From positions 248,001-312,000 of the IMG/VR virus record IMGVR_UViG_3300024239_000011: a stretch of 64,000 nt of DNA. One strand, written 5' to 3'. Under the pieces are notes generated by a model that saw nothing but the letters and a program-made list of their open reading frames with translations, did not search any database and was not told the origin of the DNA. Below, in pieces: positions 2,469-60,881 of this stretch (the stretch's first letter is position 1; every line of letters starts with the position of its first letter). A program made the translations under genes and the position numbers.

Positions 2469-2477
2469 TTCAACTCC

Positions 2478-6566: not shown

Positions 6567-6586
6567 GTTCGTTCCTTTTTCCTGTT

Positions 6587-8840: not shown

Positions 8841-10580
8841 CTACTTCAATACCAGCGCATATACCGCGTTACCACAATCATATATAAGGTTCCACCCGTT
8901 CTGGCGCATGTTTTCGATTTCGGTTTGTGCAGGATCAAAATGGTCTAACTTTCCCTTCAGTTTGTGCTTTTGAAACCCATTTCGAGATTGTAAATTCATA
9001 TTTCCTTTGAAATAGAAATAGTTGGGTGGGGAGGTGTTGATATATTCAAATCCAAGTGCCTCGTATAATTTCCCCCGTCCCCAACGTAAATCTGCATAGG
9101 AGATGATGGAAGACGGATTATGATGTGTAATGAACGCATTCAGTAATTTACCAGCACCACCAATCACCGTCGTATTAAGTCCGCTTGAATACCGTAAAAT
9201 TTCCCACTCATATTTGTGCGAATACCGGCTTTTGGAAAAACTCATTGCTGCAACAAGATCATTATCAAAAAGTAGACCATATGTGACGGCGGCATGTGCA
9301 TGCCCTTGTAGGTGGGTTTCGGAAAAAAACATCTTGCTTGTTTGATGATCCAATTCGACTACTTCAGTCTTACGGGCATATATGCTATTAGCATTTCCAA
9401 GAATTGCACAAATACGGCTTTCAACGATTTCGCGTTGAAGCAACCATTCATTTTCCCATACATGGATTAATGTTATTCCGCGTTCTGTGCATAGCTTTGT
9501 TTTCATGGAATGGTAGTTCTTTGGTTTCCCGGCATTGATTGAATGCCACCATAACCCATCGTACTCGAACGCAATGTTTTTTGAGGGTACGAAAATGTCC
9601 AATTCGTACCCTTTTAACAAATGCCTGTTATTCGTTGTTACATCATAACCGAACCCGCGAATGAAATCCGTTAATTCGCGTTGTCCACTCGATACGAAGT
9701 GAACTTTTGGGGTAATTCCATGTTGTTTGAACCGGTGACACACCGGGAAAATAGATATCCCCAACTGTTGGGCGATTTCTTTTAATGTATATGTTTGATT
9801 TTGTTCTTTAAGCCAGTCAATATCATCCAGTTTATCTGCGACTCCTGCTGGAAAATGATATTGGTTTGGTTTACGTACCCCTATGGACGTGAATAGCTCT
9901 TGTAGCTTCTCTTTAATGTGAAGAACTTTCATGGGATTGTCACGCCCATACTTTGCGATCCAGTGGTTTTTGGTTTGCTTAATAACCTCTGAATTTTGAG
10001 ATGGGTAATCTGTTCCAAACTTTTGGCGGTTGGTTTCTTTGACTTTTTCGATGATTTTGGTTGATTGAGTTGGCCAAGCAACTCCATGGTTGTGAAGATT
10101 TGATTGCTGAACTTTATCTAGAATTTCAGCATTCATGGTAGGTGACTTCACCCCATATCGATCAATACAAGTTTGAGCGGTTGCGTGTTTGACAGCATCC
10201 GTCATTGATGCGAAATCCGCACCGTATTTTTCTCGGTTAGTCGTTTTCCGCTTGGTAATGATGTTTTGGCGATCTGTTTCCGAGCGATGTTCGCGTGCTT
10301 TTTCAGCGTTTTCTCGGTTACACGCGCATACCGACTGGTTGCCGCAAAATTTTAGATAGCCTTTATTAAAGGAAACAAAGGTAGGGCGCGAACCGTTAAC
10401 GCACATTATCTCGGGGACGGTTTTTCCATTCAAATATAGCCACAGTTTTTCTATATCAGGGACATCGAAGCCTCCAATAAAAGCTTCGATGTCTGCCCAA
10501 AAGTGTTCTTTTGCTATCTTCAGTTTTACTCGTGTATCAGAGTGTGATGATAGCATTTCAAGGTGGTGTTCTCGGTACAT
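8841..10580 (-). CDS. Hef/Vsr-like free-standing homing endonuclease with N-terminal repeats
   Basis: Repeated T..(E/K)KYG...P units; ELDIFVPSKNIAFEYDGLWWH; IHVWENEW; IYARK; SYADLRW; IYDCG; AT-rich. Confidence 0.8.
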   Translation of the reverse strand: MYREHHLEMLSSHSDTRVKLKIAKEHFWADIEAFIGGFDVPDIEKLWLYLNGKTVPEIMCVNGSRPTFVSFNKGYLKFCGNQSVCACNRENAEKAREHRSETDRQNIITKRKTTNREKYGADFASMTDAVKHATAQTCIDRYGVKSPTMNAEILDKVQQSNLHNHGVAWPTQSTKIIEKVKETNRQKFGTDYPSQNSEVIKQTKNHWIAKYGRDNPMKVLHIKEKLQELFTSIGVRKPNQYHFPAGVADKLDDIDWLKEQNQTYTLKEIAQQLGISIFPVCHRFKQHGITPKVHFVSSGQRELTDFIRGFGYDVTTNNRHLLKGYELDIFVPSKNIAFEYDGLWWHSINAGKPKNYHSMKTKLCTERGITLIHVWENEWLLQREIVESRICAILGNANSIYARKTEVVELDHQTSKMFFSETHLQGHAHAAVTYGLLFDNDLVAAMSFSKSRYSHKYEWEILRYSSGLNTTVIGGAGKLLNAFITHHNPSSIISYADLRWGRGKLYEALGFEYINTSPPNYFYFKGNMNLQSRNGFQKHKLKGKLDHFDPAQTEIENMRQNGWNLIYDCGNAVYALVLK

Positions 10581-44600: not shown

Positions 44601-47600
44601 ATCGGGAGAATCTTCGACAATGTAAAATCGCGGATTTTCGAGTGGTACGGCTTGACTTCGTTGATGTATCCAATAATTGAGTCGGTCTTGTCTTTACGCA
44701 ACACCGGTTCTTGAATCAACGGCTCGTTGATACCCTTGATGAACAGAAACGATGTTTTGAATGCCCAATCGACCATCCGGTGTTCGGTATGAGCGTAATG
44801 TACCATAGCAAAGAACAGGGCATTGATTTCACCCTTGGACAGTAACCCTGGTATATCAGCATCACCCATCAATGCTTTCAGCATAGCCTTGAACTCAAGG
44901 CTACCATCACGGAGGCGGACAGTCTCCCAATATGCGTTCAAATCAGTTGGATGATTGTCCTTAATGATTTGGCGCCGACTTTCGTCGTAGAACCGATCAC
45001 TCAGCTTAATAGTACCATTCTTGTAGGCTACCATTTTCCAACGACCGAAGGCTTCACCATCAACCTTGCCCTGGTATTCCTGCCAGTACCAGAGGTCAAT
45101 GTCCTTTTTGTCAATCCGGATCAGATCGCCTGCTGAGAAACCAACCTCACGGTCGTGGATATCGCGTTCAACTTCACTTGGGAATACATAACGCGGGATG
45201 TTCAGCTTCGAATAACCAGTATCATACCAGTCAACGGTAGACCAGAAATCAATAGTTTTATAATGCTGAACTGCATCGCAAGACCAACGACCGGCAACGG
45301 TCGGATCGTAACTCCACAGAGACCAGAAGCCATAGGTTGAAGTATTACCACGAACCAGAACTCGGGTACCACGTTCTAGAACGAAGTCAGGGTCGATTTC
45401 CTTGGCATTGCGTTCGTCAAATGAGTCAACTTCCATGTGGTAGTCTAAATCACCAACTACCTCAAACCAATTGTTGTTGTCCACGCCAACCACTGCGTTC
45501 GAAACACACTGTATCCACTTGGTGCCACGATTGTCATTACCACGACGAACATAGATATTAGCCCCTTCCGGTAGGTGGCTACCGGCGGCACAATCAGTGG
45601 CGCGAACGAATACCTTGTCGTTTTCGTGGTAAACGTAGATGCCGTTCTCCGTGGCATCTATCTGGTTCTTCACCAGTACGCGGTTGCCCTCCCGGACAAA
45701 CACACGGTCGATGGTACCAGGGAATGTACCGCCAGTTAAATCAACGTTGCCGTCAATCGTCGCGGTGGCCAAATCGACATCAATCTTCGCAAGCAGACCT
45801 ATACTTGAACCAACATGCTTCTGCGCTACTAATGCCCGTGGAGATTTTTCAGTGAACGTCAGCAAACCTTCATCGGACGATTGAAGATACGTAAGATCAC
45901 CTTGCATGACCGGGCGCTTGGTCAGCATGGTATTCACTCGCTCTACAATGATGCGACGTGCCATGTAGCGGTCATTGAACCATGACTGGCGCGGACGGAA
46001 GAGGTTGCCATAACGTTCCACCGTGGACAGGCTCAGGTCGGGAACGTCCATGTATTCGACGTTGAAGCCAACCAACGAGTCGGTCATCTTTCGCCACAAT
46101 AATGGATCGGGGTATGACCGGTCATCACCTTCGCGCATCAACACCCATTCACGGTGAACGTTGTCTTCGCGGTCGGTACGACGATAGTTAACCTGAACAA
46201 TACTGTTCTCATCGTTGAGCAGATAATCAACACCTGAAATGATTGTCGCATCTGGTGAGATTGGTGCGAACCATGGCATATCAAATGTCGATGGGTTCTC
46301 AATGAACTTAGCAACCTGAGTGGTCGTCAATTTGCGCCATTCAACCGGGGGAACTGTTGCCTTGTTTTTGACCCAGAAATAGTATACGGTTTTATAATCA
46401 CCGGTAGCCGGATCATATTCGGTGCGCTCACACCATGCCGGGTTGTTGGCATCCTTTACTGATCCAGTTGGTTTGGCGTCAAATGCTTCGATTGCCTTAC
46501 CCTTGTTGATTTCGACTTGACGTGCCCATTCGGTGGGAGGAACCGTTGAACGGGTCCACTCGTACACATCAATCGTGGCACGGGGCGCCAAACGACCCCA
46601 CACGTACTTGCGATACTTGTTATCACTAATCTCGTAGTCGAGGAACTTGACGGTACTCAAATCCCACCACAGGCGATGTTCTTCTCCACCACCCCAGGCA
46701 ATTTCCGGATTCATACGATGGTATTTGGGGTCGCCATTATTGTATACTGCCGGATCAATTTCCAGTTTGTACCAAATTTCTGCATCAGCCGTGCCCGGTA
46801 TGATGCCCTTGGCAGGATCATACAGGTGAACGTACTGCTGTACCTCAGTGGTTTTCTTGTCATAGATTACCGCATTGAAAATACGATTGTTATCTACTTT
46901 TGCTGGTTGGATACGAACCGGTATGGTATCGAAATTATTACCGTTGTATTGATATACTGCATACTTACCATTACCCGCATCATCTACATAGGCAAGGTCA
47001 CCTGACAACCACTGCCCGGTATTCAGCGTTGCATTGCGTGCAGATATGGTTGCAAAACGGCGTGGGAAGAATTTCATCACGGCAGGACCAGTGGTTCCGC
47101 CCTGCGAAGTCCAATCAAACATGTCGTCAATTACCACCGGAATGATGAATTCCGTAGTAGATGGTACTGACTTCACATAATGAATACCACGTACATCCGG
47201 TATCGACTTGGTATCTGTAGTGATTACGATCAAGTCGTCAATAGCAAGATTATGGGTGTCCGAAACTGTGATTTTAGTTTCAGTATCCGACACATATTCG
47301 ACCTTGGTAACATTAACAACAGCCGTACCGAGGTTCTGAACAGAGAACATCTGCCATTCGTCATTGATGTCGTATACCCAAATTTTTTCACCCGTCACAA
47401 AGTTCTTACCCTTCTGAAGGATTTCGTAGTGAACACTGGACAAGTCGGTAAGATCAAGGGCATAATGATCAGATTCATCCACACGGGCATAACCAGCAAC
47501 CGGAAGATCACCCTCACGGGTTTCATTGATTGCGCGTAGCGGGAAAATGGTTTCCATTTCCCGGTTTGGTTTCACCACCCACCGGTTCTCGGTTTCTACC

Positions 47601-50600
47601 AACCGTCCAGCGTCAATGTCTTCCACGATAGTTGAAGCACTGGTGTGTGCGGACAACACCGAGTAATACCGGTTGTCGAATTTAACCTCTTCATATTTTG
47701 AATAGAAGGTATTCGGTGCCCATGACTGAACTTCAAGTGGAATATTGACTACATCATCGTTCGGCAGATCAGCAATGGTACTGTTGTTGGCGAAAAACTC
47801 AACCAACTGCGGACGTGACCGTACTTCTCGTTGACGCAACAAGAATTCAAAGGTCAATTTATTGGTAACGCCACCATAGTTTCCGACGCGGAATGCCCAT
47901 TCATCAAAGAATTTAACTTCTTCCGCGTCCAGCACAAAGAAACTACGCAAGAGTTTTTGCATAGCATCAGAGGTGCCTTTCTGACGCATGGCACCCTGGA
48001 AGAACTGGAACTCGGTCTTAGGATCAAGCAACAGATCATTCATATAAGCGCGACCCTGGTAGCCCACTAAGTGCAGCGAGTAATTACGCAGGGTTGGATT
48101 ATCTACCCCATCTTCAATACCAAAGAAATGACGGAAGTCATCCACGGTCTTTTCGAAGTTTGGGATCAAAACATTGTCGGTCACAATAAAACCGGGGGCA
48201 TCCATGCGCCCAACCCAATCCATTGACCGCGTTGCCGACAGACGGAGACGTGGCTGACGCAGGTTGAATACCGGATCATAGATCAGATCATTGAAAATTG
48301 TCACGTTGTCGAAAATGATAACGTGTTCAACTTCACTGACAAACAAACGGGTCAGATAAATCAATTGGTCGTTACGTGACGTGACCACCAATTCATTACC
48401 GACGCGCGAGACATCGGTTTCGCGCGGTTGTATCATAAAGCCATCGCGATTAAGCATCGAATATGCACCACGCACAATGCGTTCGATATTCTGTACTTCG
48501 CCATGGTCGGTGACGAATTTGACATATTTTGATGCCGGTGACAGTGCAATAGTATTACCCGGTGCCCAACGTCCGAGAGACCAGAACAAAAAGTCCTTGC
48601 CAACCGAGACCCAATCAATCGTCTCTTCGTTGGCAAAATCCATTTGTTCGAAAACCCATCCGTCTTTCTTCAGCCAGCGTCCATAATCCACAAGGAAGTC
48701 AAAAACATCTTGTGGATTGTAAAATTCAGTACCATACGGTACATTAAGAATGTTTCCGGCACGGTTTGCATCAAGATAATGAATTACCGTGATGCCTTTA
48801 TTATTCGGACCAAGATCAAGTGGTTTCCAGAAGGAATCCCCAAACTCTTCACCGGAACGATGGTTGTCAATGCACTTGTATTCAACTCCCTGATTAACAA
48901 CGATATCCCCTGCCGTGTACACAACATGAGCTTGCCATGGACGACCAGTTTTTTCGGTCTTACCAACGGCAACCTTGGTCTTGCGACCATTGATATCACT
49001 TGGAATGGTGCGGAATACTGGATCAACCACATCGTAACCAAACACCTTCCATCCTCGACCGGTCCACTGCACGATTACGCCGCTATAGGTGTGATCGGCA
49101 ATGCTCGGGCTGCGATATAGGAAGACGTTGATGTTTTCGCTCGGGACCAAACCGAAGTTATCGGCACGAGCCTGTAAGGTGTTCTGATCCACAAACCCCG
49201 CCATTTTGTGACCAAGACGCACGTCAATACCACGAATGACCTTACCGAACGCCTCGGTAATATCCTGACCACGGCTTTTGATGTAATCACAAACCCATTG
49301 TTGTACCCCGGTCACGCGATAACGCTGCGGAAGATCAACCTCAGAGGATTCTTCGCCATGCAAGGTCAAATAGCTGTGCGGACGACGGGCACGAATATCA
49401 TCGTACACCCACTGACGGGTTTGCTTCTGGTTGCGATAAATTTCCTTCAGGCGGACGGTATCCCAACAGTATTCGATCAGTCGCACCGGCTTGATCAAAT
49501 ATCCGCTCATGGTAGCAGCGAACGGGAAGTTCGGGCTGCGGCGCCATGCGGTTTCTGTCGGTCCATGATCCCCGAATTTCCATTCCTGCTGTGCTTCAAA
49601 CGCAGTCGGAAGGCGCGAACAAATACCAGCAGATACCGGATCAATCAAATTACCAAGATCATCTACCGGAATGTACTGCGACATTCCGGGACGCTGGTAC
49701 TCTGAATAGGTACCAGCGGTCGGTCCACGAGCGATAATGCCGTTTTCAAGATCGCCCCACAACTTGGTATTGCCGCGCGTATATGGAGCCACGCCGTAAT
49801 GGGCATCCCACCAATCCGGCTTTTGTGACATACCAAGCATTTCCCATGGGTGTGTATGGGGGCGGTCGGTATCAAAATAGTACAAATAGATGCCACGCCA
49901 ATGCCCTGGCAACGGCTGCCCGTCACGATCAGGAACCGCTCCGTAATTCCATGTGAATGGATTGTCGGCAATCCACGTCTGGTTTTCACGATAATTGACG
50001 CGAGACATCGTTGCCCACCGTTCAAAGGCAGGACGGATAATGCTGTTCCATTCAGCCCATGAATAATCGGTCAAATAGCCTGCACCACCCTCACTCGCGG
50101 GGCGCCGGAATTTACCAGATACGTACCGACGATGGTCGAAAATCCGTTCAGCCCCTCGTTGGGCAAAACGCAGCGACGAATTGTTGTAAACGCGCTTCTC
50201 AAATTCGAGTACAACGCTGTTCAGGAACTCATATTCCCCGGTGAAGCTTTCGATATACGAACCATCATGTGCCTGAATAAACTGACGTGGGTTCAGCAGC
50301 GTCTCATCCACTACCATCCCAGGACGGAAAATAGCATAGATGCCCATTTGAGAGGGCGACGGTGGCACGTAGGTGAAATACCCATCATACCGGATCAGAC
50401 GAATTTTATCGGTTTCATTGAGGCTGAAATCGCCAAGCAGACGTATTTCGTCTACGTCAGTCTCGTAGTCCCACCCACGATCCAATAATTTCGGAAATTC
50501 GCCGTTCTTTTCCAAATAGACGAATGATTTTTCGATGTTCTCGCGGGTGCCTGGAATCAGATATTCGTTGACACCGGTAAAGCAGTCCACCGAAACTTCG

Positions 50601-53600
50601 AAAACCTTGAAGTTATCACCCGCCGGGCACATTGTGGAGTATGCAAAGGGGAAATCAACAGTCTTACCAACATTGATTTCTTCCAATGCCCGATTGACGA
50701 AATCTTCAGGGGAAATCAGTCGATCAATACCCTGCTCATAGATATCCACAATCTTACGGATAAATTTGTTACGGAAACGGCTGAACTCATGTTCCGCATA
50801 CTGTATCGACAACATGAAGTCAATGTTTTGATCTGATGCCATAATCATAGTCTTCAACATCGGCGCTCGATGTTGAAGAATTACGCGACCAAACGAACGA
50901 TCCTTTGGGGTGTCACGGTAGTTGTTTACCCCGTACACGTTCCCGTTAAAATTCTTCTGACTCTTCAATATCGTCGTGAAGTGATCAAAGAATTCATTAT
51001 AACTGATTTCACTTACTTCACGAGAATCCGGGTTGCCCTGAAGATTGAACGGAACCTCATAGACGCCAACCAGATTATCTGGCGCTCGCCGCACATAGGT
51101 GTAAATGGTCACAAGGTTATTCTTCGCAACACCGTTACGCAAACTGACAACACCATCAGATACCGAATAATCAGTGTACAAATTGAGTTCTTCGGCATTA
51201 ACCATTACAGAAATGGCATCCGGATCGATCAATTCATCAACGGTTAAGTTGTGCGAAATTGCGAAATCAGTTTGACCTTCGGTAGAGATGTAGGTGTGTT
51301 TGATGCGCTGACGGCTTGGCATATCCACCAAGTACCAGTCGTTTGAATAATCAAAACTGCCATCAATTTTCTGGGTACGATGGAAGTAATACCCCGTAAT
51401 CTCATCCTTATCCAGGGCATAATTGAACCGTTCGGTGGTTAAGTAATTCTTGTAAATGGGATGACCACTTGCGCTGTGTTTGACGCGCATTTCAAGAATT
51501 GTGTCCATTGGAACGCCCGCCGATGCTTCATCGGTGAATCCAAAAACGCGGCTACCGGCGAACGTGGATTCTGGGTAACGCCCCGGATCATCCAAGGCAA
51601 CGCCGTCGATGTCGTAGAGTGCAAATAATGGGGGCTGGTTCGAGTGGGTCTTGCGCTGAACTTCAATCCAGTTGTCGCCATCGAAGCGGAAATCACGGTC
51701 AAGGTTTGAGAACCCGTATCGAGAACGAATGGTGTCGCCAACCGAAGGAAGACCACTTTCATTCTCGCCAACAATGACCGGCGATAGTACCACACGTCCA
51801 GTGGATTTGATACCAGATACACGGTAAATGCGATTGTTGTATTCTGGGTTTGGATCATTGGTGATCAAGATGGTCATACCATCGCGGATCAAAATGCCCT
51901 TCTCGGTATCCCAGATAATCGCGGTGATCTTGGTTTGTGCAGTCCCGGTAGGTTTACGAATGCTTAGTGTGTTATTGGCGTTGATACGATAATCGAAACC
52001 AATACGCACTGGACGATCATTGAAATAGAATACCGCACGCAACGCTTCGTCCGGAGTTAACCCAAGACCCATCGTCGGATTGGATAGATCAATGGTGTAC
52101 GATCCCGCATCGACAAACCAAGTCGAAGTCGGATCATTGGCAGTATCTACCCAGTTTTTACCACGTGCTGATACATCAAGCAGCAAGGGTGCAATACCAA
52201 ACTCACGTAACGGGGGCTGATTGTGAATAAAATCAGGATTGGAAGCAGCGAACCCATTGATCTGAGTGAACGTTAATACGTCTTCCTTAACATCCACATC
52301 ACCAACACGACGTTGACCATACTGATACAATTCCAAATTACGCTTGAACTCAATGATTGGACGCTCAGCGCGAATCGCGTCGTCCGTACCACGGTCGGCA
52401 CGAGCAACGACATCCTCGTGGAACCACCGGTTCCCGCGACTCCATGGATTGCCGTCAATACAACCACGCTCCATCACAAGATAATCTGGACGGGCACTGG
52501 TTGTCGCCAAAGCAACACTACCCCAACCAAGACCCTGCTCGGCATCCCACCCAAATGGTTCAATGCGCAGATTGATTTCTTTTCCAACCCCGGCAACTTT
52601 ATACATACAGGTCTTGTAGGTATACTTGGTGACTTGTTCGAAACCATATGTAACAAAGATGATCAGCATGTTGTTGGTCAGCGCAATCGGCTCGGACGGC
52701 GACGCATACGATGCTTCCCATTTGTCGTCATAGGGGTCAGTCACATCCGGTGGGGTCATCGGATCAAATGGACGCCACGGGTTGTCCTGATTTGCTCGCT
52801 TGTAATGACCACTAAAATCAAAATATTTCTTACCGTTAATGGTCGTGATGAAGTTTTGAATATCAGTATTCGGGTCTTCAATGAAAAATACGTAGGGTGT
52901 GACCGTATAACGACCAAGATCATCCCAGCGATGACCACCTTCACCCTCTGGTTCTTCAATCAGGAATGCAGATACACCAACTCCTTCAATAATGAAAGTC
53001 TTGTTGTTGAACTGATCGCTATTCACGTCGCGGCGAATAGTCAAACGCATTCCACTGGTGAGGGTTAGCGGTTCTACCGTTCCGTCGTGCGGCTCAGTGA
53101 TGCTGTCATCAGACGGCAGCCGATATTTTCCCGTGAATATTAATGGATAATCCGTATTCCCGACCAAAGTTCGTTCCACATCAGTCAAACTGAGAATTTC
53201 AATCGGTTTCGGTCCACGCGGCATCCAATAATACCGTTTGAAATTCATAAGCTTATCGATGTCTACCGGCGGACACCATGAATAAAACTCATTGTCGAAA
53301 AGACGGTTATGGTCGTTTATCAAACCGCCATGAAAACGCAGATGGTTCAATAGATCATCGTAGAACAAAGCATGCGTCACCGAAGCAGTTTCCGTGGCGC
53401 GGCTGATTGCTATGGGTTCCATCGAATAATCTTGGCGTGTCTTTGATGGCTCCTGAATGTAGAAATCCTTTTCAGGGTCAGTATACAATGGATAGCGTCC
53501 AATGTATCCACTGACTACTTCCGATGCCTGTGGCTGGAATAGATGATCTACAGTGGCGCCAAAAAACCGCTGAAGGGTCTGGCTTTGAAGAACCGAAGGC

Positions 53601-53632
53601 AAATGCTTGATTACTTGTCTTTTCTCGACCAT
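38666..53632 (-). CDS. Giant (4988 aa) baseplate/virion structural protein
   Basis: Uninterrupted 15 kb ORF; YINEVKPYHSKIR; YFDTDRPH..PWEM; four W/Y-x4-Y-x2-(G/N)D CBM5/12-like repeats; RVLVKNQ...ENGIY fibre motif; TAAATA at 53664-53669. Confidence 0.85.
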   Translation of the reverse strand: MVEKRQVIKHLPSVLQSQTLQRFFGATVDHLFQPQASEVVSGYIGRYPLYTDPEKDFYIQEPSKTRQDYSMEPIAISRATETASVTHALFYDDLLNHLRFHGGLINDHNRLFDNEFYSWCPPVDIDKLMNFKRYYWMPRGPKPIEILSLTDVERTLVGNTDYPLIFTGKYRLPSDDSITEPHDGTVEPLTLTSGMRLTIRRDVNSDQFNNKTFIIEGVGVSAFLIEEPEGEGGHRWDDLGRYTVTPYVFFIEDPNTDIQNFITTINGKKYFDFSGHYKRANQDNPWRPFDPMTPPDVTDPYDDKWEASYASPSEPIALTNNMLIIFVTYGFEQVTKYTYKTCMYKVAGVGKEINLRIEPFGWDAEQGLGWGSVALATTSARPDYLVMERGCIDGNPWSRGNRWFHEDVVARADRGTDDAIRAERPIIEFKRNLELYQYGQRRVGDVDVKEDVLTFTQINGFAASNPDFIHNQPPLREFGIAPLLLDVSARGKNWVDTANDPTSTWFVDAGSYTIDLSNPTMGLGLTPDEALRAVFYFNDRPVRIGFDYRINANNTLSIRKPTGTAQTKITAIIWDTEKGILIRDGMTILITNDPNPEYNNRIYRVSGIKSTGRVVLSPVIVGENESGLPSVGDTIRSRYGFSNLDRDFRFDGDNWIEVQRKTHSNQPPLFALYDIDGVALDDPGRYPESTFAGSRVFGFTDEASAGVPMDTILEMRVKHSASGHPIYKNYLTTERFNYALDKDEITGYYFHRTQKIDGSFDYSNDWYLVDMPSRQRIKHTYISTEGQTDFAISHNLTVDELIDPDAISVMVNAEELNLYTDYSVSDGVVSLRNGVAKNNLVTIYTYVRRAPDNLVGVYEVPFNLQGNPDSREVSEISYNEFFDHFTTILKSQKNFNGNVYGVNNYRDTPKDRSFGRVILQHRAPMLKTMIMASDQNIDFMLSIQYAEHEFSRFRNKFIRKIVDIYEQGIDRLISPEDFVNRALEEINVGKTVDFPFAYSTMCPAGDNFKVFEVSVDCFTGVNEYLIPGTRENIEKSFVYLEKNGEFPKLLDRGWDYETDVDEIRLLGDFSLNETDKIRLIRYDGYFTYVPPSPSQMGIYAIFRPGMVVDETLLNPRQFIQAHDGSYIESFTGEYEFLNSVVLEFEKRVYNNSSLRFAQRGAERIFDHRRYVSGKFRRPASEGGAGYLTDYSWAEWNSIIRPAFERWATMSRVNYRENQTWIADNPFTWNYGAVPDRDGQPLPGHWRGIYLYYFDTDRPHTHPWEMLGMSQKPDWWDAHYGVAPYTRGNTKLWGDLENGIIARGPTAGTYSEYQRPGMSQYIPVDDLGNLIDPVSAGICSRLPTAFEAQQEWKFGDHGPTETAWRRSPNFPFAATMSGYLIKPVRLIEYCWDTVRLKEIYRNQKQTRQWVYDDIRARRPHSYLTLHGEESSEVDLPQRYRVTGVQQWVCDYIKSRGQDITEAFGKVIRGIDVRLGHKMAGFVDQNTLQARADNFGLVPSENINVFLYRSPSIADHTYSGVIVQWTGRGWKVFGYDVVDPVFRTIPSDINGRKTKVAVGKTEKTGRPWQAHVVYTAGDIVVNQGVEYKCIDNHRSGEEFGDSFWKPLDLGPNNKGITVIHYLDANRAGNILNVPYGTEFYNPQDVFDFLVDYGRWLKKDGWVFEQMDFANEETIDWVSVGKDFLFWSLGRWAPGNTIALSPASKYVKFVTDHGEVQNIERIVRGAYSMLNRDGFMIQPRETDVSRVGNELVVTSRNDQLIYLTRLFVSEVEHVIIFDNVTIFNDLIYDPVFNLRQPRLRLSATRSMDWVGRMDAPGFIVTDNVLIPNFEKTVDDFRHFFGIEDGVDNPTLRNYSLHLVGYQGRAYMNDLLLDPKTEFQFFQGAMRQKGTSDAMQKLLRSFFVLDAEEVKFFDEWAFRVGNYGGVTNKLTFEFLLRQREVRSRPQLVEFFANNSTIADLPNDDVVNIPLEVQSWAPNTFYSKYEEVKFDNRYYSVLSAHTSASTIVEDIDAGRLVETENRWVVKPNREMETIFPLRAINETREGDLPVAGYARVDESDHYALDLTDLSSVHYEILQKGKNFVTGEKIWVYDINDEWQMFSVQNLGTAVVNVTKVEYVSDTETKITVSDTHNLAIDDLIVITTDTKSIPDVRGIHYVKSVPSTTEFIIPVVIDDMFDWTSQGGTTGPAVMKFFPRRFATISARNATLNTGQWLSGDLAYVDDAGNGKYAVYQYNGNNFDTIPVRIQPAKVDNNRIFNAVIYDKKTTEVQQYVHLYDPAKGIIPGTADAEIWYKLEIDPAVYNNGDPKYHRMNPEIAWGGGEEHRLWWDLSTVKFLDYEISDNKYRKYVWGRLAPRATIDVYEWTRSTVPPTEWARQVEINKGKAIEAFDAKPTGSVKDANNPAWCERTEYDPATGDYKTVYYFWVKNKATVPPVEWRKLTTTQVAKFIENPSTFDMPWFAPISPDATIISGVDYLLNDENSIVQVNYRRTDREDNVHREWVLMREGDDRSYPDPLLWRKMTDSLVGFNVEYMDVPDLSLSTVERYGNLFRPRQSWFNDRYMARRIIVERVNTMLTKRPVMQGDLTYLQSSDEGLLTFTEKSPRALVAQKHVGSSIGLLAKIDVDLATATIDGNVDLTGGTFPGTIDRVFVREGNRVLVKNQIDATENGIYVYHENDKVFVRATDCAAGSHLPEGANIYVRRGNDNRGTKWIQCVSNAVVGVDNNNWFEVVGDLDYHMEVDSFDERNAKEIDPDFVLERGTRVLVRGNTSTYGFWSLWSYDPTVAGRWSCDAVQHYKTIDFWSTVDWYDTGYSKLNIPRYVFPSEVERDIHDREVGFSAGDLIRIDKKDIDLWYWQEYQGKVDGEAFGRWKMVAYKNGTIKLSDRFYDESRRQIIKDNHPTDLNAYWETVRLRDGSLEFKAMLKALMGDADIPGLLSKGEINALFFAMVHYAHTEHRMVDWAFKTSFLFIKGINEPLIQEPVLRKDKTDSIIGYINEVKPYHSKIRDFTLSKILPMETGHARVTDFDKPVFPLDRTIKDHAVIDVVWNGDGTYTIADPYTATDFRNSRHHKDWYENFQKIADDHYPVRSMKTTIHFDRVKWIDWYVDGEQALLKLYREHYGQREESTTKRAHRLGDRVWFHNYDGLNQDHWKVVYLRSPNHPIPTRIASLKPGASNRVIVKTPANHNVVAPHYDMNPSAYDANISYVVGDIIRWRTKNYLCIKSYVSTGDFDGEKLKHWSDAIPQIAAYVVIPQPIPEVVLTGDGHTKLFELPFRVDEHDLEVYVDGRLLDWATTANYYTDGDALEISRDNDAKTYTPDYEIVSMEQREDIVIRGTSTGTIALKNIPYHESTISVKVKRNLRGVKAWAAEKVYVVNDLAKHSGSVFVCTTSHTSVDFATDQSNWELITPDAIIPRNGTPRVTNADPLYTFMYGNGQIVMISPTPKSGDQLMITYKTDPGVRLRINETPKDGQTIYIRRRSQTTMVGAYKVMKYVDANTIEIKASLPSDIIFGSDNIPMNLLTYRDDVLTLVNEKGDNITVPYDNTMDPNLLTQAERIMLYYRPTPGMPAKDMRELLDINFKGTRMDGGDLLDTKFSEDVGNHVPVMNFVYNGQDEVPVTYWQDGMDNSLGWGDHIFDSIRDKMDGDVVVVEYNGIVQLSDAYDFYYNTTEDLWKVRFNALPNHGDLITVAVVTNDIVDGVETTMSEKKSTRYYDMNIMGGTFTAPASTSGFDDVIVDGGFFLAGPSKTFEALDGQQDFQLDGAPVVGVIGSADDLNWHARVYVNGRRRLDGYHLENIAGTWHVIFDESVVQGTEVRIELQGKPAMTNPYMDENRPQELIATRTADSLGITVYTEATAGAPSVVSARYEADDVTTHFELRQKPSSRETVFVTVGLDGENMMLEMVSRNPMTGDPLFSSDTAVRADQYYLHWDTGVVELGIAPPKGAVIKITSFSTGGTNVENIDTFVSVGVGEFTLTKLPAATPNIRVWTQAGTQPVTEITEFNVIEQQLFLGVAPTEGTLVTVTYEIEDAASNDFQNNQNQRIVEIARFSPTNGIMPPLMLKNPEGITYSQSHISVVRDGEVLSLGDYSVIKHDTGTHEVVLTDGEPGEVAIVAFNTPNIVKVRTHQYQYTAGEPIILTDVPSPTVPHHGAVLVYKKITEADLICENGQPAGTSIGDPLVADDVGRGIRLMPPTTRYFLGDGGCFAYRFERPITSVADTQIWIGQNTTPLVPVYPAGTVGGDATGTVDVGSFTIPQRFRGPIDANDALPCDGDDDLKAGDYFVIEGYFGFDDGGYDGVPFDNTPKPEGTNVRNWLGVAFAGTWATKGMNRPNPNQTNQNEFGFEDGDMILYLGRGRWSRMITSAGMRNTGNYAASLARAVEEATREIHFFDAPSKNADICFVWYEHGKYDYDIKNGNELHLYGPTFAGLTLEDGDWITVTTFSDDEAMGIRTEVFTATVNGKYPLTRVPSDANSLWVNTNGRRNIYGMDYTIQNSTIGWDNLSWDAYFGWDDNRSRPLVSFNNRHSGDWRVVVTTFTNRSAQQPVGFRLFKNSQDEWEYLRIADAHKTKLNTALDFDDRHMQVVDAKVFVTNNEAAILSRKDVTMYATTATLVVNIDLLSSTPVPPVHVVVSDNAAGGAADGIITHADIAMAINSNADLRAVTISAAITEHGHLIIRRVDGQDFSISDSASDALATAFFGNNVVSSVRPLLTPEAVFVDGERIEYMGIDVVNNRLLNIRRGTGGTSSGIRNIYRNHMEVSDGLKEEFILPGWFDPMNDDAVMIKAEYVDHGKVMVKEYRKESYTVTRNDTDEVVVKFPYAPTEGWVLTFSATVSNWEISGASYPAGTIVVDGGAPQYIPGGYRWEGLLDKGFQGQLDAIPVGTKGVTQADAGRWYQLSRAYDAELLDIRVIIEHEGFVDPETGETRTIEEQLIRYQDWFIDGTILKFRRNIPAPTNGQNNIILHLRSYRGLQYSNSAMAQFLREKPATHYWGN

Positions 53633-54683: not shown

Positions 54684-54746
54684 TATCACTTGACTTTTAG
54701 TACGGTGAATGTCAAAAATCCATAAGCGTTCACCGGAGTTTTCGCC

Positions 54747-55358
54747 ATGCCCTACGACCCCAGTGCTTTCATTCACTTCGCGATGCAGAACGGCGTGTTT
54801 CCTGAAGGCGGGAAGTACGGTGATCGTATTACCTTCACCATCCATGCGCCCAATAATCTAATGTTGGTGTTGGACGCCGGGCGGAATACCGGGGTACTGC
54901 CGCCCTCGTTGGAGTTCGACAAGCGCAACGGTAAGATCACCAAGGTCTGCAATGGGTTCGACAAGTACCCCGAAATGCTAAAGTGGATAATCACCTGCTA
55001 CGTGTCCCAGCGCGTCACCCGTATGACTGGTTTGAAGGTAATCAAGATGACCCAACTGGTCGATTACGACGCTGCCACCCAGGAATTCGACAAGATGGGT
55101 CGCGGCGTCCGCTCTGGCATTCGTGACTGGTTCACGCGCCTGGGGCAGGACATGCTTGCGGTACCAGTGATGGAGGCGCTTGCCCTCACCGAACGTGCGA
55201 TGATACTGCTGTCGAAGTTGACGGAAGAACAGGCGGATGTTCTGTATGAGGAAACGGAAACCGTGCGTCGCAAGTCGCAATTGGGTTTAATCGAATATAT
55301 GTCGGAGCAAGAGATTCTGGTTGAATTGCTCGACCAGATTGAGAAGGAAGTTCAGTGA
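54747..55358 (+). CDS. Hypothetical protein abutting the repeat array
   Basis: GGAG RBS; stop codon 6 nt before the first repeat; no Cas motif recognised. Confidence 0.75.
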   Translation: MPYDPSAFIHFAMQNGVFPEGGKYGDRITFTIHAPNNLMLVLDAGRNTGVLPPSLEFDKRNGKITKVCNGFDKYPEMLKWIITCYVSQRVTRMTGLKVIKMTQLVDYDAATQEFDKMGRGVRSGIRDWFTRLGQDMLAVPVMEALALTERAMILLSKLTEEQADVLYEETETVRRKSQLGLIEYMSEQEILVELLDQIEKEVQ

Positions 55359-55364
55359 TCATTT

Positions 55365-56284
55365 CTGTCGCACCACGATCCGTGGTAATTTCTTAGGTAC
55401 GGTTTGTCCACCATGGTACTATCGCACCACGACTGCCGTGGTATTTCTTCGCTTTTACGGCTGGGTCCATGGCCACGCCCGTCTTTCGGACCACGAGCAG
55501 ATTGCCGTGATATTTGCTTCAAAGAAAGCACAAGGAATGGCGCTCTGCGAAACACTTTCGCACCACGATTGCCGTGGTATTACCAACATTCACGGTAATG
55601 GTTCTGAATCTGCGGCTTTCGCACCACGAGCAACCGTGGTATTGCCTTCCAACGACAGGAGGAATGCATGCGCAGTCTTTCACTTTCGCACCACGAGCAG
55701 ATTGCCGTGGTATGTTTCCCTGATCGGGACGACATCTACGCCCTGTTCAGACTTTCGCACCACGAGCAGATTGCCGTTGGTATTGCTTCGCGCGACCTGA
55801 TCAATTTCCTCGAAGAGATTCGCCTTTCGCACCACGGGTGAATTGTCGTGGTATTTGCTTCCGATGAAATGGAACATGCCGCCAAAACCGACGTACTTTC
55901 GCACCACGGGCAAGTTGCCATGGTATTGCTTCACCAGCAAAAACAGACCGCATGTCGCGATGGTCAGCTTTCGCACCACGGGCAAATTGCCGTGATATTG
56001 CTTCCAGCTTGGTCACCACCAGCGTGTCGCCCTCGCGCTTTCGCACCACGGGCGAATTGCCGTGGTATTGCTTCTCTGACTATCGCCAAGCAGCAGGTCG
56101 ATCTCTATCGCACCACGGGTGAATTGCCGTGGTATTGCTTCCCCCGGCAACTACCTTGCCTTCGTCCATGTTGATCCTTCGCACCACGGGCGAATTGCCG
56201 TGGTATTGCTTCCCATAGCTGCTGGATTTGACAGCATGATGTTCGAGCTTTCGCACCACGGGCGAATTGCCGTGGTATTGCTTC
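55365..56284 (-). CRISPR. CRISPR-like array, 14 repeats and 13 unique spacers (about 26-35 nt)
   Basis: Plus-strand consensus CTTTCGCACCACGGGCGAATTGCCGTGGTATTGCTTC (37 nt); starts at 55365, 55419, 55483, 55555, 55616, 55683, 55752, 55824, 55896, 55968, 56038, 56105, 56176, 56248; hairpin ACCACGG/CCGTGGT; decay increases leftward; minus strand ends in GAAAG (orientation inferred). Confidence 0.9.
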
Positions 56285-56344
56285 ACCGCGCGCCCTGAGT
56301 ACACGTAGCCGTCATGTAACGGGCTGTCATGTGCAGTTATCGAT

Positions 56345-56488
56345 GCATACCACGGTTCTCGTGGTGCGAACGACACCCTGTTCAAGGGCGTCGATTTGTA
56401 TTTGGTAATACACCACGCCAATCGTGGTGCGACAGCTACCTACAATCGTTGCCAACAGTCCTATAACAATACCACGACAATCGTGGTC
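56345..56488 (+). CRISPR. Three inverted degenerate repeats with two spacer-sized gaps
   Basis: ATACCACGGTTCTCGTGGTGCGAAC, ACACCACGCCAATCGTGGTGCGACAG and AATACCACGACAATCGTGGTC are reverse complements of the short-loop variants in the main array. Confidence 0.75.
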
Positions 56489-56563
56489 TTTTTATTTGCC
56501 ATACTATACAGACAGGTGTATGCATGTATGCATGAATGATTAACCGAATCATGAGGTGCAAAT

Positions 56564-56974
56564 ATGTCCTACCCTACTCGCGAAGAAATCCAAGCTGCCG
56601 CTCTGCCGCTGATGAAGGCTCAACAGCTTCGTCTTGGCTTCTATGTAACTGACGATATTGTGGCAGAACTGGCGAAGGAATTCGGCGTCGATCTCAACGA
56701 GAAGATCGAAACCGGTCGCAGCAAGTTCGGCAACCTGTTCGACTGGGTGACTGCTCGGATGACTTCCACCGGGCAGCACGTCAAGATCAAGCCGAAGCAT
56801 TATCGGCTGGTGCTTTTCCCGTCTGTGACCGATCAGCGGGATGCCAAGGTGGACCACAAGACGGCTCCATCCAAGAATGATTTGTTGCTCAAACTGGCAC
56901 AGCAAATCGACACAATGGCGCAGAACATGGCGCAGATCAACGAAACATTCCGCCAGCTTCAAAAGGCGGCGTAA
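56564..56974 (+). CDS. Stand-alone Mrr N-terminal-like winged-helix protein with coiled-coil tail
   Basis: PT.EE....LPLM...IVAELAKEFG...TGRSKF.N..DW....M...G resembles Mrr_N; no nuclease domain. Confidence 0.6.
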   Translation: MSYPTREEIQAAALPLMKAQQLRLGFYVTDDIVAELAKEFGVDLNEKIETGRSKFGNLFDWVTARMTSTGQHVKIKPKHYRLVLFPSVTDQRDAKVDHKTAPSKNDLLLKLAQQIDTMAQNMAQINETFRQLQKAA

Positions 56975-56977
56975 ACG

Positions 56978-57009
56978 AAGAAACCCCGCCACTGGCGGGG
57001 TTTCTTTTT
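56978..57009. terminator. Bidirectional terminator
   Basis: AAGAAACCCCGCC-ACT-GGCGGGGTTTCTT followed by T. Confidence 0.8.
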
Positions 57010-57017
57010 CGAGTTAT

Positions 57018-57251
57018 TCACCAACACTCTTCGCATCGCAATTCGAATACCGTGTCTTGATCACAGTTTTCGGGGATCGTCACTTTCAATTTCGCTCGAT
57101 CTATGTGAAGGATGCGTAGGGTGATTTTCACCGTGACATCAGGAAAGATCACAATGTCGTCAACCAAAGGGACGACAGGCATTGTTTTGGTGAATGATCT
57201 GCTCGACATACCATGGCGAAATGTCATATCGAATAAGACGAGGTATTTCAT
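57018..57251 (-). CDS. Hypothetical protein
   Basis: ATGA overlap with the upstream ORF. Confidence 0.55.
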   Translation of the reverse strand: MKYLVLFDMTFRHGMSSRSFTKTMPVVPLVDDIVIFPDVTVKITLRILHIDRAKLKVTIPENCDQDTVFELRCEECW

Positions 57252-57925
57252 TCCGCTTCGTCCCATTCTTTATCAAACGGACGGATGAATTCCCACCGGT
57301 CATTACACCAACGGATATGTTCACATGGCACTTCACTGTATGGGGTTTTACGCCCATCAATCCAGTCGATCTGCACTCTCTTGGTGTCCGTGTCGATAAT
57401 GACCACTGTACCTTCGCGGTCAGCGTCCTGCCACACCGAATCGCCTTCGAATAGGGTGTGTTCGGTTTGTTCCAAACGACGTTCAAGGGTTGCCATGATC
57501 TCTTCGGCTGACATGGCATACCGTGTGACAACGGTATCCGGTCCCAACAGCCCAAGTGCCCGTGATACCAGCCCATCGATGAAACCAAGTTTCACCCCAT
57601 CACTGGCTTCTTCACCCGCCAGTGTGGACATGAGGCGTGCTGCCATGATTGCTTCGAGGTAGATGTCCAGCTTGGCGACCCGGTGATTGTCGAAACCACC
57701 CGCATAAGCATGTAAGGCACGCGCCAATTCGGCATGTCCGATCCCAGCTTCGTCCGACATGGCATTGAGTGCGATGAGCAGCCCGCGCCCGATATCAGTC
57801 ATCACGTCGTCGGGAACATTTTCACCGCCATGGATACCACGCACCATCAGCACGGAGTTGACCAGATCGACTACTTGCTGGGCAATGACCATTGACAACC
57901 GATCACCAATCACATCTTCAGCCAT
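57248..57925 (-). CDS. Hypothetical protein
   Basis: GAGG RBS before MAEDVIG. Confidence 0.65.
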   Translation of the reverse strand: MAEDVIGDRLSMVIAQQVVDLVNSVLMVRGIHGGENVPDDVMTDIGRGLLIALNAMSDEAGIGHAELARALHAYAGGFDNHRVAKLDIYLEAIMAARLMSTLAGEEASDGVKLGFIDGLVSRALGLLGPDTVVTRYAMSAEEIMATLERRLEQTEHTLFEGDSVWQDADREGTVVIIDTDTKRVQIDWIDGRKTPYSEVPCEHIRWCNDRWEFIRPFDKEWDEAE

Positions 57926-58723: not shown

Positions 58724-59740
58724 TTAATACACCAATTCGTCTTGTTCGTGACCTTCGTAAATGATAATCTGCCCGGATACCGCCAGTTCCTTAGCAATAA
58801 CGACGATGAGCGACTGCGCCTGATCCACGTCGCGTAGGCGTACTGGTCCCATTGCGTCCATGTCTTCCTTAAGCATTTTTGCCGCACGTTCGGACATGTT
58901 CTTCATGAACAAGTCTTTGATGCCATCAGAGGCACCCTTGAGCGCCAGGGACAGTCGGTCTTTTTCCACCTGACGCAGTAATGTTTGGATACCAGCGGCA
59001 TCCAAGCGCACCAAATCCTCGAAGGTGAACATCAGCGCCTTGATCTTTTCCGCCGATTCGCGGTTGCGTTCTTCGAGCGAGGACATCAAGCGGTTTTCGG
59101 TGGTGCGGTCGAGGTTGTTGAAAATATCTGCCATCAATTCGTGGGTATCGCGGCGTTGGGTGCGGGCGAGGTTGCCCATAAATTCGGTACGCAAGATATC
59201 TTCAACCTGATCCAACACTTCCTTCTGTACCGCCTCCATACGCAGCATGCGCATCACCACTTCCATGGCGAAATTTTCCGGCAGTAGTGCCAGCACGCGG
59301 GCGGCGTGGTCGGGCTTGATCTTGGCCAGCACGACGGCGACGGTCTGCGGGTATTCGTTCTTCAGGTAATTGGCCAGCACCGCTTCGTTGACGTTGCCCA
59401 GCTTGTCCCACATGGTACGACCAGCGGGACCGCGAATCTCTTCCATGATTCGGCTGGCTTGATCGCTGGGTAATGCCTTAGTGAGAAGTCGTTCCGTGCT
59501 TTCGATGGAACCGACTAGCGTACCAGTGGTCAAAAGGTTGTCTGCAAATTCTGCATACAGAGTTTCGATCAATTCAGGCGTAACGGTGCCTAGGTTCGCC
59601 ATGATCTGCGACACTTCCTTGATTTCGTCATCATCAAGGCGGTGCAGAATTTGCGACCCGTGATCTTCCCCGAGTGCCATGAGGAAGATGGCGGCTTTTT
59701 GTGGACCCGTCAGGCAACGATAGTCGGTCTTTATCGGCAT
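58724..59740 (-). CDS. fliG: Flagellar motor switch protein FliG, alphaproteobacterial type
   Basis: [54 protein letters not shown]; full length; TAAATA at 59769-59774. Confidence 0.97.
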
Positions 59741-60084: not shown

Positions 60085-60807
60085 TCAGTCACCCTCGTTT
60101 TCCAATGGTTGCCACCCGTTCGAGCCGCAGACTTCGAGCGGTTTGAAGCGGGTTTTATATTTCATGGTTTGTGCCCCTTTTACCCAAAATCCCAGATAGA
60201 AATACGGAAGGTTTTGGCGTTTGAGTTCTTCAATTACCCAGAGGATCGCAAAAGTACCTAGCGACCGTTTATCCATGGACGGCTCGAAGAACTGGTAGTT
60301 TCCAGAAAACCCGTCATTCAATCGGTCGATCAGGGTCACTCCGATAAGATGCCCATTGGCATCCCGGAATTCGTATAGGAACGTTTCAATCGGGCTGATC
60401 TCAACCATCGACCGATAGTCCTCAAAACTCATCAACGCCATGTCACCGCCAGTGTGTCGCGTTTCCTGATAGCGTGTGAACAATCCGTATTGTTCCTTGG
60501 TCGCAACATTCTTCACGCGAGTAACAATCAAATCGGTATTTGTCTTGATAATTTTGCGCATGGTGCGGTCAGGAGCAAACCCATCAACAACAATACGCAC
60601 AGATTTACACTCCGAGCAGCCCGTGCAGGTTGGAGTATAGATGATGTTATGACTGCGCCGATAGTTTGACGCTGCCATATCACTATAAAATTTCTCGGCA
60701 TTTTTCAGGCTGGAAATTTCAGTCACGGTTTTACGTTCAGCCCGTGCCGGAAGATATGGGCACGGCAGCGGTGACGTTGTGAAGTAATATGGAGATTTTC
60801 TCGTCAT
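60085..60807 (-). CDS. ate: Bacterial ATE/Bpt family aminoacyl-tRNA--protein transferase
   Basis: PCPYLP..ERK, YRRS...Y.P.C..C..C.SVRI, Y...RH..G.M, SLGTF.IL, YLGFWV, M.YK.RF.P.E. Confidence 0.93.
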   Translation of the reverse strand: MTRKSPYYFTTSPLPCPYLPARAERKTVTEISSLKNAEKFYSDMAASNYRRSHNIIYTPTCTGCSECKSVRIVVDGFAPDRTMRKIIKTNTDLIVTRVKNVATKEQYGLFTRYQETRHTGGDMALMSFEDYRSMVEISPIETFLYEFRDANGHLIGVTLIDRLNDGFSGNYQFFEPSMDKRSLGTFAILWVIEELKRQNLPYFYLGFWVKGAQTMKYKTRFKPLEVCGSNGWQPLENEGD

Positions 60808-60881
60808 TGAACACCTGTGATACACCACCCGCCATGTTAGCGTTCTGGTTGTGCATTGTCAATGATCGCCTAAATACGATC

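Follow-up and report, generated by a model that had tools for sequence, protein, structure and literature searches.

The two-armed repeat block and its surroundings

The stretch of DNA analysed here (64,000 nt; hereafter the window) corresponds to approximately positions 248,001–312,000 of the IMG/VR virus record IMGVR_UViG_3300024239_000011, which is contig Ga0247724_1000001 (543,035 bp). Its carrier is a huge T4-like phage that encodes a T4-type portal and baseplate, thymidylate synthase, DHFR, its own sigma factor and a lysozyme/baseplate-spike protein, together with many small genes without families. Between two genes of this phage we identified a compact block of CRISPR repeats organised in two arms that point away from each other. 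We interpret this block as, probably, the array pair of a phage-borne type IV-A CRISPR-Cas locus without its cas genes. The features of the block and its immediate flanks are as follows.

54747–55358, plus strand: upstream flanking gene, 203 aa, no known family; sigma-70-like promoter match at 54690–54719
55360–56495, no strand: the entire cassette that varies between strains, 1,136 bp; its allele in the sister-strain contig L064 is an insert of 8,525 bp (1408–9932)
55365–56284, minus strand (likely guide sense): main arm (array 1), repeats R1–R14 and 13 spacers; newest end at 56284, decayed trailer end at 55365
56285–56340, no strand: centre, junction of both arms, 56 nt, GC 0.57; not unusually structured in a fold test
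56341–56494, plus strand (canonical sense): minor arm (array 2 remnant), short-loop copies I1 (56341–56372), I2 (56404–56435) and I3 (56463–56494)
56471–56497, plus strand: end of the minor arm, resembling an intrinsic terminator (hairpin of I3, ACCACGACAATCGTGGT, then CTTTTTATTT); from a terminator scan, fold −8.7 kcal/mol, z −3.5
56564–56974, plus strand: flanking gene on the downstream side, 136 aa; likeness of its N-terminal part to the Mrr_N winged-helix fold (only a lead); anchor to the sister strain

The main arm is composed of 14 repeats of 30–38 nt in the same orientation (37 nt in the newer half; plus-strand consensus CTTTCGCACCACGGGCGAATTGCCGTGGTATTGCTTC, 37 nt), which alternate with unique spacers of 24–35 nt at start-to-start intervals of 54–72 nt. 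The core pattern of the repeat occurs ten times in the window, as against 0.00 occurrences expected from shuffled sequence. The minor arm contains three inverted copies separated by two spacers of 31 and 27 nt, and both arms thereby display the regular direct repeats and unique spacers of similar length that define a CRISPR array. Upon folding, all copies of both arms form a 7-bp hairpin in either sense; that of I3 carries CTTTTTATTT directly 3′ and was flagged by the terminator scan on the plus strand. The spacers of the main and minor arms are unrelated. Merging the window with five extension loci gave 130,967 bp (131 kb below), and across this region we found no similarity between spacers, no match of a spacer to the remaining sequence, no self-target and no second copy of the repeat. 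A scan of the window against Rfam returned no match, and the tRNA scan was likewise empty.

The copies adjoining the centre are the best preserved: R11 is identical to R14 and R13 differs by one change. Edit distances to R14, read from R1 to R14, are 11, 8, 7, 9, 7, 6, 4, 4, 3, 2, 0, 2, 1 and 0, and this cline along the arm is significant (Mantel r 0.46, p 0.001). The block thus has the polarity of a CRISPR array, with a conserved leader end and a degenerate trailer end. Old copies of the main arm have loops of 3–6 nt versus 10 nt in the intact repeat. The inverted copies have 5-nt loops and find their nearest neighbours by edit distance among these old copies (I1 with R5, I2 with R4, I3 with R2/R4); I2 and R4 share an unusual 8-nt tail, ATTACCAA, and I2 is 100% complementary over 15 nt to R1 and 92% over 24 nt to R4. 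The most degenerate copy of the minor arm is the outermost one, I3. An earlier reading made from the letters alone (the sequence-only reading) had described 14 repeats running one way at 55365–56284, a gap of about 60 nt that is not AT-rich, three inverted copies with spacer-sized gaps and a T-tract, near-perfect repeats beside the gap, arms pointing away from the centre and inverted copies closest to the short-loop copies at the far left. Repeat calls with their shuffle control, the edit-distance cline and the exact 15-nt match between R1 and I2 bear out this description. The nearest-copy comparison likewise relates the inverted arm to the oldest part of the main arm.

Assembly support and co-occurring strains

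The sequence-only reading had allowed that the inverted arm might be a misassembly. An ENA contig of 869,618 bp (ERZ27245855:k141_178484), which comes from a separate assembly, carries this sequence too and is identical over the 12,070 nt compared, array included. Two further samples of the same study contain Logan contigs that run from the last repeat across the centre and the inverted arm into the downstream gene.

56255–57400: junction-bridging contig, run X2, record 8
56255–56626: junction-bridging contig, run X3, record 14

An 808-nt contig with identical spacers is found in runs X3 and X4. As independent assemblies bridge the centre, the junction is not a misassembly.

Runs X2, X3 and X4 also contain a second strain, which matches the window up to 55356, continues into unrelated sequence and rejoins the window at 56496. 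The sister strain described in the next section shows that this second allele carries cas genes, and the cas-less and cas-bearing alleles are both present in runs X2–X4 at comparable depths. An inversion of the whole cassette was considered for the second strain and rejected, as its loose ends differ from the reverse-complemented ends of the cassette and the sister strain accounts for them. Separately, a wastewater metatranscriptome (X5) contains near-identical 151-nt pieces at 55139–55289 and 55424–55574, the latter over R2–R4 at a depth of 2; these pieces indicate the presence of the sequence only. The phage or a near copy of it thus occurs outside the subsurface study.

A sister strain carries a type IV-A cluster at the same position

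Through a 99% identical homologue of the 136-aa downstream protein we reached a sister strain, represented by the 33.9-kb ENA contig NODE_195 (L064). Its flanks are 95.5–98.6% identical to the window, and the contig contains both loose-end strings of the second strain exactly. In place of window positions 55360–56495 (1,136 bp), L064 has 8,525 bp (1408–9932), so that a type IV-A locus occupies the position of the block in a close relative, with both alleles present in X2–X4. The order of the insert is main array <- dinG <- cas7 <- cas6 <- orf237 | cas5 -> orf193 -> short-loop mini-array, with the following features.

First genes of the insert (window orientation): 199 aa; 290 aa with Peptidase_M50 and pentapeptide domains
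3033–3712: main array, seven perfect 35-nt repeats beside dinG and decayed short-loop copies at the far end
Minus strand: dinG/csf4, PADLOC typeIV_DinG, E 2.7e-41
Minus strand: cas7/csf2, typeIV_Cas7, E 3e-13
Minus strand, 7062–7565: Cas6/Cas6e-like gene, E 1e-12
Minus strand: orf237, 237 aa
Plus strand: cas5/csf3, typeIV_Cas5, E 1e-25
Plus strand: orf193, 193 aa
9689–9916: minor array, about five inverted short-loop copies directly after orf193, ending at the same flank as I3 in the window

The two arms of L064 are separated by 5,973 bp that contain the six cas-cluster genes, and the centre of the window block sits exactly where L064 has these genes. All six, together with the promoter region between the two operons, are absent from the window strain. 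For the L064 cas proteins, NCBIfam gave weaker agreement than PADLOC. Comparison of the 56-nt centre with the ends of dinG and orf193 and with the divergent promoter region of L064 and L066, the relative described below (AATTAGGGTTGAC), revealed no similarity above shuffled sequence.

Two further observations concern the left part of L064. Positions 1406–3005 include two repeat-like copies (2887–2911 and 2946–2966) followed by a perfect 40-nt palindrome (2966–3005), a terminator; the pair and the palindrome form a third, tiny array-like unit. In addition, the 203-aa upstream gene is apparently disrupted or rearranged at L064 608–1407, where we found overlapping alignment pieces and gene calls of 87 aa and shorter.

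A second relative defines the layout of the family

In a set of 5.8 billion proteins, the DinG of L064 has one other relative, 59% identical, which is located on a 251,722-bp ENA contig (L066). The csf3 genes of the two contigs are 63% identical. The layout of L066 is array 2 <- orf193 <- csf3 | orf238 -> cas6 -> cas7 -> dinG -> array 1.

Array 1 of L066: 18 repeats, perfect beside dinG and decaying outward; last copy with a shrunken loop
Array 2 of L066, 5190–6204: about 16 heterogeneous copies after orf193
Cas6e-like gene of L066: 8354–8854

The family layout therefore comprises two divergent operons, orf237-cas6-cas7(csf2)-dinG(csf4) and cas5(csf3)-orf193, each trailed by a co-directional array. 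In this layout the two arrays point away from each other because each follows its own divergent operon. In both L064 and L066 the conserved end of the array faces the cas genes and the repeats of the trailer lose loop length. The comparison across related phages that the sequence-only reading had proposed has thus proved informative: both relatives place the cas cluster between the arms. Judged from its position, the inverted arm is the second array, which in the relatives lies downstream of the divergent csf3-orf193 operon. A bacterial relative (L067) was also considered as a guide to the two-arm question and set aside, as its cluster runs in one direction with no array within 2 kb. As an observation on L066 itself, two spacers of its array 2 (5352–5381 and 5733–5761), each with the adjacent repeat, are diverged copies of each other, which points to an internal duplication.

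Repeat family, guide orientation and transcription signals

The repeats of the window, L064 and L066 share one form, consisting of a 7–8-nt head, a 6–7-bp stem, an 8–10-nt A/T-rich loop and the tail GGT(G/T)CG(A/T)NAG; overall identity between the window repeat and those of the relatives is low. The tails of the three families are GGTGCGAAAG, GGTTCGTTAG and GGTTCGATAGG, and the loops contain AATT or ATTT. The stems read ACCACGG/CCGTGGT versus ACCCCC/GGGGGT, with two pairs changed on both sides, which gives them the look of a conserved Cas6 hairpin substrate.

Arrays with the core of the window repeat were not found outside this phage in IMG/VR, in GTDB (185,579 species, each represented by a single genome) or among 241 million JGI metagenome records that include the source sample; the other matches to the core in these collections are single chance matches. 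A literature search with the repeat strings returned nothing relevant. The sequence-only reading had pointed to host genomes as a place where the repeat might be found, and no host array with this repeat emerged from the species genomes or the JGI metagenomes.

By analogy with the homologous arrays, the guide sense of the main arm is likely the minus strand, with the repeat GAAGCAATACCACGGCAATTCGCCCGTGGTGCGAAAG, and that of the minor arm the plus strand, because the L064 and L066 arrays lie downstream of dinG in the same direction with their perfect repeats beside dinG. The only sigma-70-like site is that at 54690–54719 on the plus strand, upstream of the 203-aa gene. Read-through from this promoter would transcribe the main arm antisense and the minor arm in sense. 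We also noted that the motif TAAATAC stands 18–64 nt upstream of many start codons in the 131 kb, with 11 of 17 copies intergenic. It is a candidate late promoter resembling that of T4, TATAAATA (for example at window positions 11584, 24085, 53669 on the minus strand, and 63915). No exact copy occurs in or near the array, and the motif gives no pointer to the direction of array transcription.

Spacers and their targets

Among the 15 spacers, the protospacer search matched one, S10.

56005–56037, no strand: spacer S10, the sole one for which the databases gave a match; it corresponds to the GDTLVVxKL region, conserved in serine recombinase (resolvase) genes of plasmids and phages

The best match (33/35, E 2e-4) is to a gene for a ‘recombinase family protein’ on plasmid pAMS5c of Methylobacterium sp. 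AMS5; many other plasmids are matched too, and Rhodobacter phage RcXuper is matched over 26/26 nt. The window plus strand of S10 is antisense to the recombinase coding sequence. This plasmid match is in keeping with the bias of type IV spacers towards plasmids (PMC7038947). The sequence-only reading had counted an array without protospacer matches against its proposal; S10 supplies one match, and the other 14 of the 15 spacers remain unmatched in the phage and plasmid databases. A blastn search of INPHARED at E 1e-5 gave nothing, and exact cores of the newest spacers, S12 and S13, identified only the array itself in IMG/VR. We found no cross-targeting between the spacers of the window, L064 and L066 and the available sequence. 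The arrays of L064 and L066 had no match among plasmids, nor had the L066 array among phages.

Search for cas genes

Cas genes were sought by scanning about 49 open reading frames with Pfam, PADLOC or NCBIfam and by inspecting precomputed Pfam calls for every called gene in the 131 kb. No cas family was identified by either route in the region around the array. The type IV-A gene set (csf1, csf2/cas7, csf3/cas5, dinG/csf4 and a cas6-like gene) was encountered neither beside the window array nor elsewhere in the 131 kb, and the open reading frames scanned included no class 2 effector (Cas9, Cas12) and no TnpB-like gene. As far as these scans reach, they agree with the sequence-only reading, which had recognised no cas gene in 64 kb.

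Searches on the scale of the whole genome were directed at the type IV proteins. HMMER comparison of Csf3 with 1.84 billion representatives recovered only L064 itself, L066 (63%) and distant proteins of at most 35% identity, and none of the 20 best Csf3 homologues lies on the 869,618-bp or 543,035-bp contigs. A wider Csf3 alignment proved too heterogeneous to scan loci with, and a narrower one was used; the motif scan of IMG/VR (which holds the 543-kb contig) with this narrow alignment yielded no relative. A DinG 8-mer search of IMG/VR also gave nothing. Together, these Csf3 and DinG searches argue against a type IV partner elsewhere in the genome of the window phage, as judged from the sequences available. 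The sequence-only reading had suggested scanning the whole phage genome for cas genes. The part covered, 131 kb, contains none, and the genome-level Csf3 and DinG searches are empty; other Cas families may lie in the remaining 740 kb or so.

The flanking proteins have no relatives in IMG/VR, and the 203-aa protein has none in the 5.8-billion-protein set. In an Atlas structure search the first 86 residues of the 136-aa protein resembled the Mrr_N winged-helix DNA-binding fold (TM about 0.52), which we treat as a lead only. Protein-atlas look-ups of the 203-aa and 136-aa proteins and of a 647-aa protein gave no Cas-like lead, and a PDB sequence search with the 647-aa protein found nothing.

Interpretation of the block

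The reading of the block as the array pair of a type IV-A locus that lacks its cas genes draws on its anatomy, on the cas cluster allelic to it, on the layout common to the two relatives and on the lack of cas genes nearby, and we consider it probable. In type IV-A systems a Cas6-like enzyme processes the hairpin repeats, and the Csf complex together with DinG silences or blocks plasmids; these systems have no adaptation genes, can borrow a type I-E adaptation module, and their spacers mostly match plasmids (PMC7038947; 10.1101/2023.06.23.546257; PMC11656645). By this model, new repeat-spacer units would have been added at the ends facing the cas genes. The best repeats would stand at the centre because growth took place at these ends, and the outer repeats would be old and decayed, with shrunken loops. 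The minor arm probably stopped growing early, which would account for its likeness to the oldest part of the main arm, and it would end at its own last repeat, doubling as terminator. We infer that the arrays of the window could be transcribed, processed and used in targeting. Should transcription occur, a Cas6e-like enzyme would cut each of the hairpin repeats and so yield a guide with a 7–8-nt handle (GCGAAAG), which would be loaded into the Csf (Cas5/Cas7) complex and, with DinG, would silence or block plasmids and other mobile elements. The locus of the window strain cannot carry out such interference alone because it lacks both the proteins and the native promoter region.

Several points weigh against this reading. 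The window repeat is clearly different from those of L064 and L066, and no cas cluster tied to a window-type repeat was seen anywhere we searched, so that the cas-bearing ancestor of the allele is itself an inference. The centre contains no recognisable cas or promoter remnant; a simple deletion is unproven, and replacement of the cassette by recombination would be equally possible, the two being indistinguishable because no remnant is present in the 56 bp. The plus-strand promoter-like site at 54690, the plus orientation of both flanking genes and the terminator after I3 would fit plain read-through, opposite to the sense of the main arm. The PADLOC and NCBIfam matches of the L064 proteins fall under the NCBI curated cut-offs, and Csf1 was not recognised in L064 or L066. 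The single spacer match of 15 is to a widely conserved motif. Finally, the gene-by-gene inspection covers 131 kb of a genome of about 543–870 kb, with about 740 kb of the 870-kb contig outside it.

As regards the present state of the arrays, we lean only slightly towards an inert and fairly recent relic; the promoter region has been lost, spacer content is the same in all samples and no targets were found. It is almost as likely that they still supply guides to a matching Cas in trans, whose source would be elsewhere in the genome, in a co-infecting relative or on a host plasmid. Counted in favour of retained use are the identity of R11 with R14 and the single base that sets R13 apart, the intact hairpins, the terminator of the minor arm and an allele depth comparable to that of the cas-bearing allele. 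That the arrays do something else appears doubtful.

Alternative explanations

The alternative that fares best, although we consider it unlikely, is that the block is an orphan phage array that hijacks a host CRISPR-Cas system. Its repeats would mimic a host array, and the Cas6 and effector of the host would load the phage guides for use against competitors, as Al-Shayeb et al. (2020) modelled it for Cas-less arrays. Such a role agrees with the lack of cas genes within 131 kb, with the documented Cas-less phage arrays that carry host repeats (PMC7162821) and with the match of S10 to a gene of mobile elements. However, this explanation calls for a host array with the same repeat, and none was found among the 185,579 species genomes, the 241 million JGI records or IMG/VR; the type IV-A cluster of L064 also provides a closer explanation.

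Less likely still is an RNA decoy or regulatory mini-array of the Racr/Cracr type, in which hairpin RNAs, especially those of the minor arm, would soak up or reprogram the Cas proteins of a host or rival. The minor arm, with its three short-loop copies and 27–31-nt spacers, does resemble viral Cracr, which have two to three spacers of short length, degenerate repeats and smaller loops (10.1101/2024.10.29.618823), and Racr provide a precedent (PMC10651486). No cognate Cas system with the window repeat was found in IMG/VR, GTDB or JGI, though, and the spacers of the minor arm match nothing in the available sequence, including the L064 cas region. In L064 the same short-loop copies stand beside a cas cluster that is intact and are explained there as the decay of an old array, and a decoy role is not needed to explain the anatomy.

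The sequence-only reading had put the block forward as a candidate for an undescribed guide-RNA system and had named built-in anti-repeats, processed as with trans-activating CRISPR RNA (tracrRNA), as one option; neither proposal finds support. In the anti-repeat model the inverted copies would pair with the direct repeats in one plus-strand transcript for processing of the RNase III type, on behalf of an effector of unstated kind. We regard this model as very improbable: the complementarity of I2 to R4 and R1, the plus-strand terminator after the inverted arm and the promoter-like site upstream of the whole block are compatible with it, but each repeat is a palindromic, stable 7-bp hairpin, which sets it apart from repeats that depend on a tracrRNA, the inverted copies pair best with the decayed repeats of greatest age and poorly over the loops of the newest ones, the open reading frames scanned included no Cas9, Cas12 or TnpB-like gene, and the inverted copies of L064 and L066 are an ordinary second array, 6 kb of class 1 cas genes away from the first, so that no pairing role is needed.

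The array pair of a type IV-A locus remains our preferred reading. The block is a real and well-supported feature that, as a probable orphan array pair on a megaphage, has an ordinary evolutionary explanation and does not call for a new guide-RNA system; the repeats are hairpins of the Cas6-processed kind and the second array has its counterpart in two relatives. The notion of bidirectional acquisition put forward in the sequence-only reading survives in so far as there are two separate arrays, each grown at its cas-facing end.

Two novelties come into question, and we consider them unlikely. The layout of L064 and L066, with two divergent operons each followed by its own array and the extra orf193, may represent an undescribed type IV-A variant of lytic megaphages. 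The window allele, for its part, may be a guides-only allele that is kept beside the cas-bearing one and uses Cas proteins made in trans by co-infecting relatives or host plasmids; if so, huge phages that are close relatives would be dividing the labour between them, or one would be acting as a cheater on the other.

The two-armed block thus marks a type IV-A site on a T4-like phage of more than 500 kb, and cas-bearing and cas-less strains are found side by side in the same subsurface samples. Type IV systems are seen mainly as a tool of plasmids against plasmids, and their carriage by a megaphage with a spacer to a plasmid recombinase widens the range of users. The natural pair of alleles offers a ready comparison for asking whether orphan arrays work with Cas proteins from elsewhere. 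Where inverted copies lie beside an array, a second array belonging to the same locus is a likelier explanation than a new mechanism of RNA pairing.

Other features of the phage

The 869,618-bp ENA contig, with its T4-type portal and baseplate, may represent a phage genome above the 735-kb record cited in PMC7162821. Among the products of this phage are a FliG flagellar switch protein, full-length with three domains (E 1e-35 to 1e-42 for each), and an arginine/leucine-tRNA protein transferase (ATE_N, ATE_C), both of which are conserved in L064.

58724–59740, minus strand: FliG gene
60085–60828, minus strand: ATE gene

A single open reading frame of 4,988 aa occupies window positions 38666–53632 on the minus strand, and its only recognised part is a CBM_5_12 carbohydrate-binding module. 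About 4.6–11 kb past the right end of the window there are five consecutive radical S-adenosylmethionine (radical-SAM) genes (347–501 aa; L056 14553–20960), preceded by three unknown genes (647, 444 and 380 aa); this run resembles a biosynthetic cluster. Window positions 2–4077 and L059 7180–13307 contain a cluster that resembles restriction-modification systems, with a HaeIII-like endonuclease, a D12 adenine methylase, a 778-aa AAA_23/SMC-like ATPase and an HNH gene, beyond which lie GmrSD_N, HamA-like and PDDEXK genes.

Comparison with known systems

The block shares with class 2 tracrRNA anti-repeats an inverted repeat-like copy beside the array, followed by a hairpin and a T-tract. It differs from them in its palindromic repeats, in the presence of several spaced copies and in having no class 2 effector among the open reading frames scanned, and the relatives show an array at this place. 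As a three-copy, degenerate, short-loop mini-array on a virus, the minor arm is comparable to the viral mini-arrays and single repeat units and to the Racr/Cracr elements (PMC11656645; PMC10651486; PMC10120712; 10.1101/2024.10.29.618823). However, it stands beside a 14-repeat array, matches a regular second array in position in the relatives and has no known target cas locus.

Two divergently oriented arrays that flank a cas operon are found, for example, in type I-F loci of Pseudomonas aeruginosa (PMC13142298). The window similarly has one repeat family in opposite orientations, whereas the genes between its arrays are gone, the arrays abut and the type is IV-A. The Cas-less or adaptation-less arrays of huge phages (Al-Shayeb et al. 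2020, PMC7162821), for which a role in competition between mobile elements has been proposed, are a further parallel, as the window array is compact, resides on a phage of more than 500 kb and has no neighbouring cas genes. In contrast to the arrays described there, no repeat identical or nearly identical to that of the window was found in an array of a cas-bearing host in GTDB, JGI or IMG/VR, and the origin of the block can be traced to a phage type IV-A locus via the polymorphism with and without cas genes.

The closest comparison is with type IV-A loci, which consist of csf1-csf2-csf3, dinG/csf4, a cas6-like gene and one array and are found mainly on plasmids (PMC7038947; Benz et al., 10.1101/2023.06.23.546257). 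The window departs from them in having no cas genes and in being carried by a huge T4-like phage instead of a plasmid; the cluster of L064 and L066 departs from them in its two divergent operons, each with an array, in its unrecognised Csf1 and in the extra 193-aa gene after csf3. As in these loci, L064 and L066 encode DinG, Cas7/Csf2, Cas5/Csf3, a Cas6e-like protein and arrays of hairpin repeats without adaptation genes, and the window repeat shares its form and tail with the repeats of both relatives, while one of its spacers matches plasmid genes.

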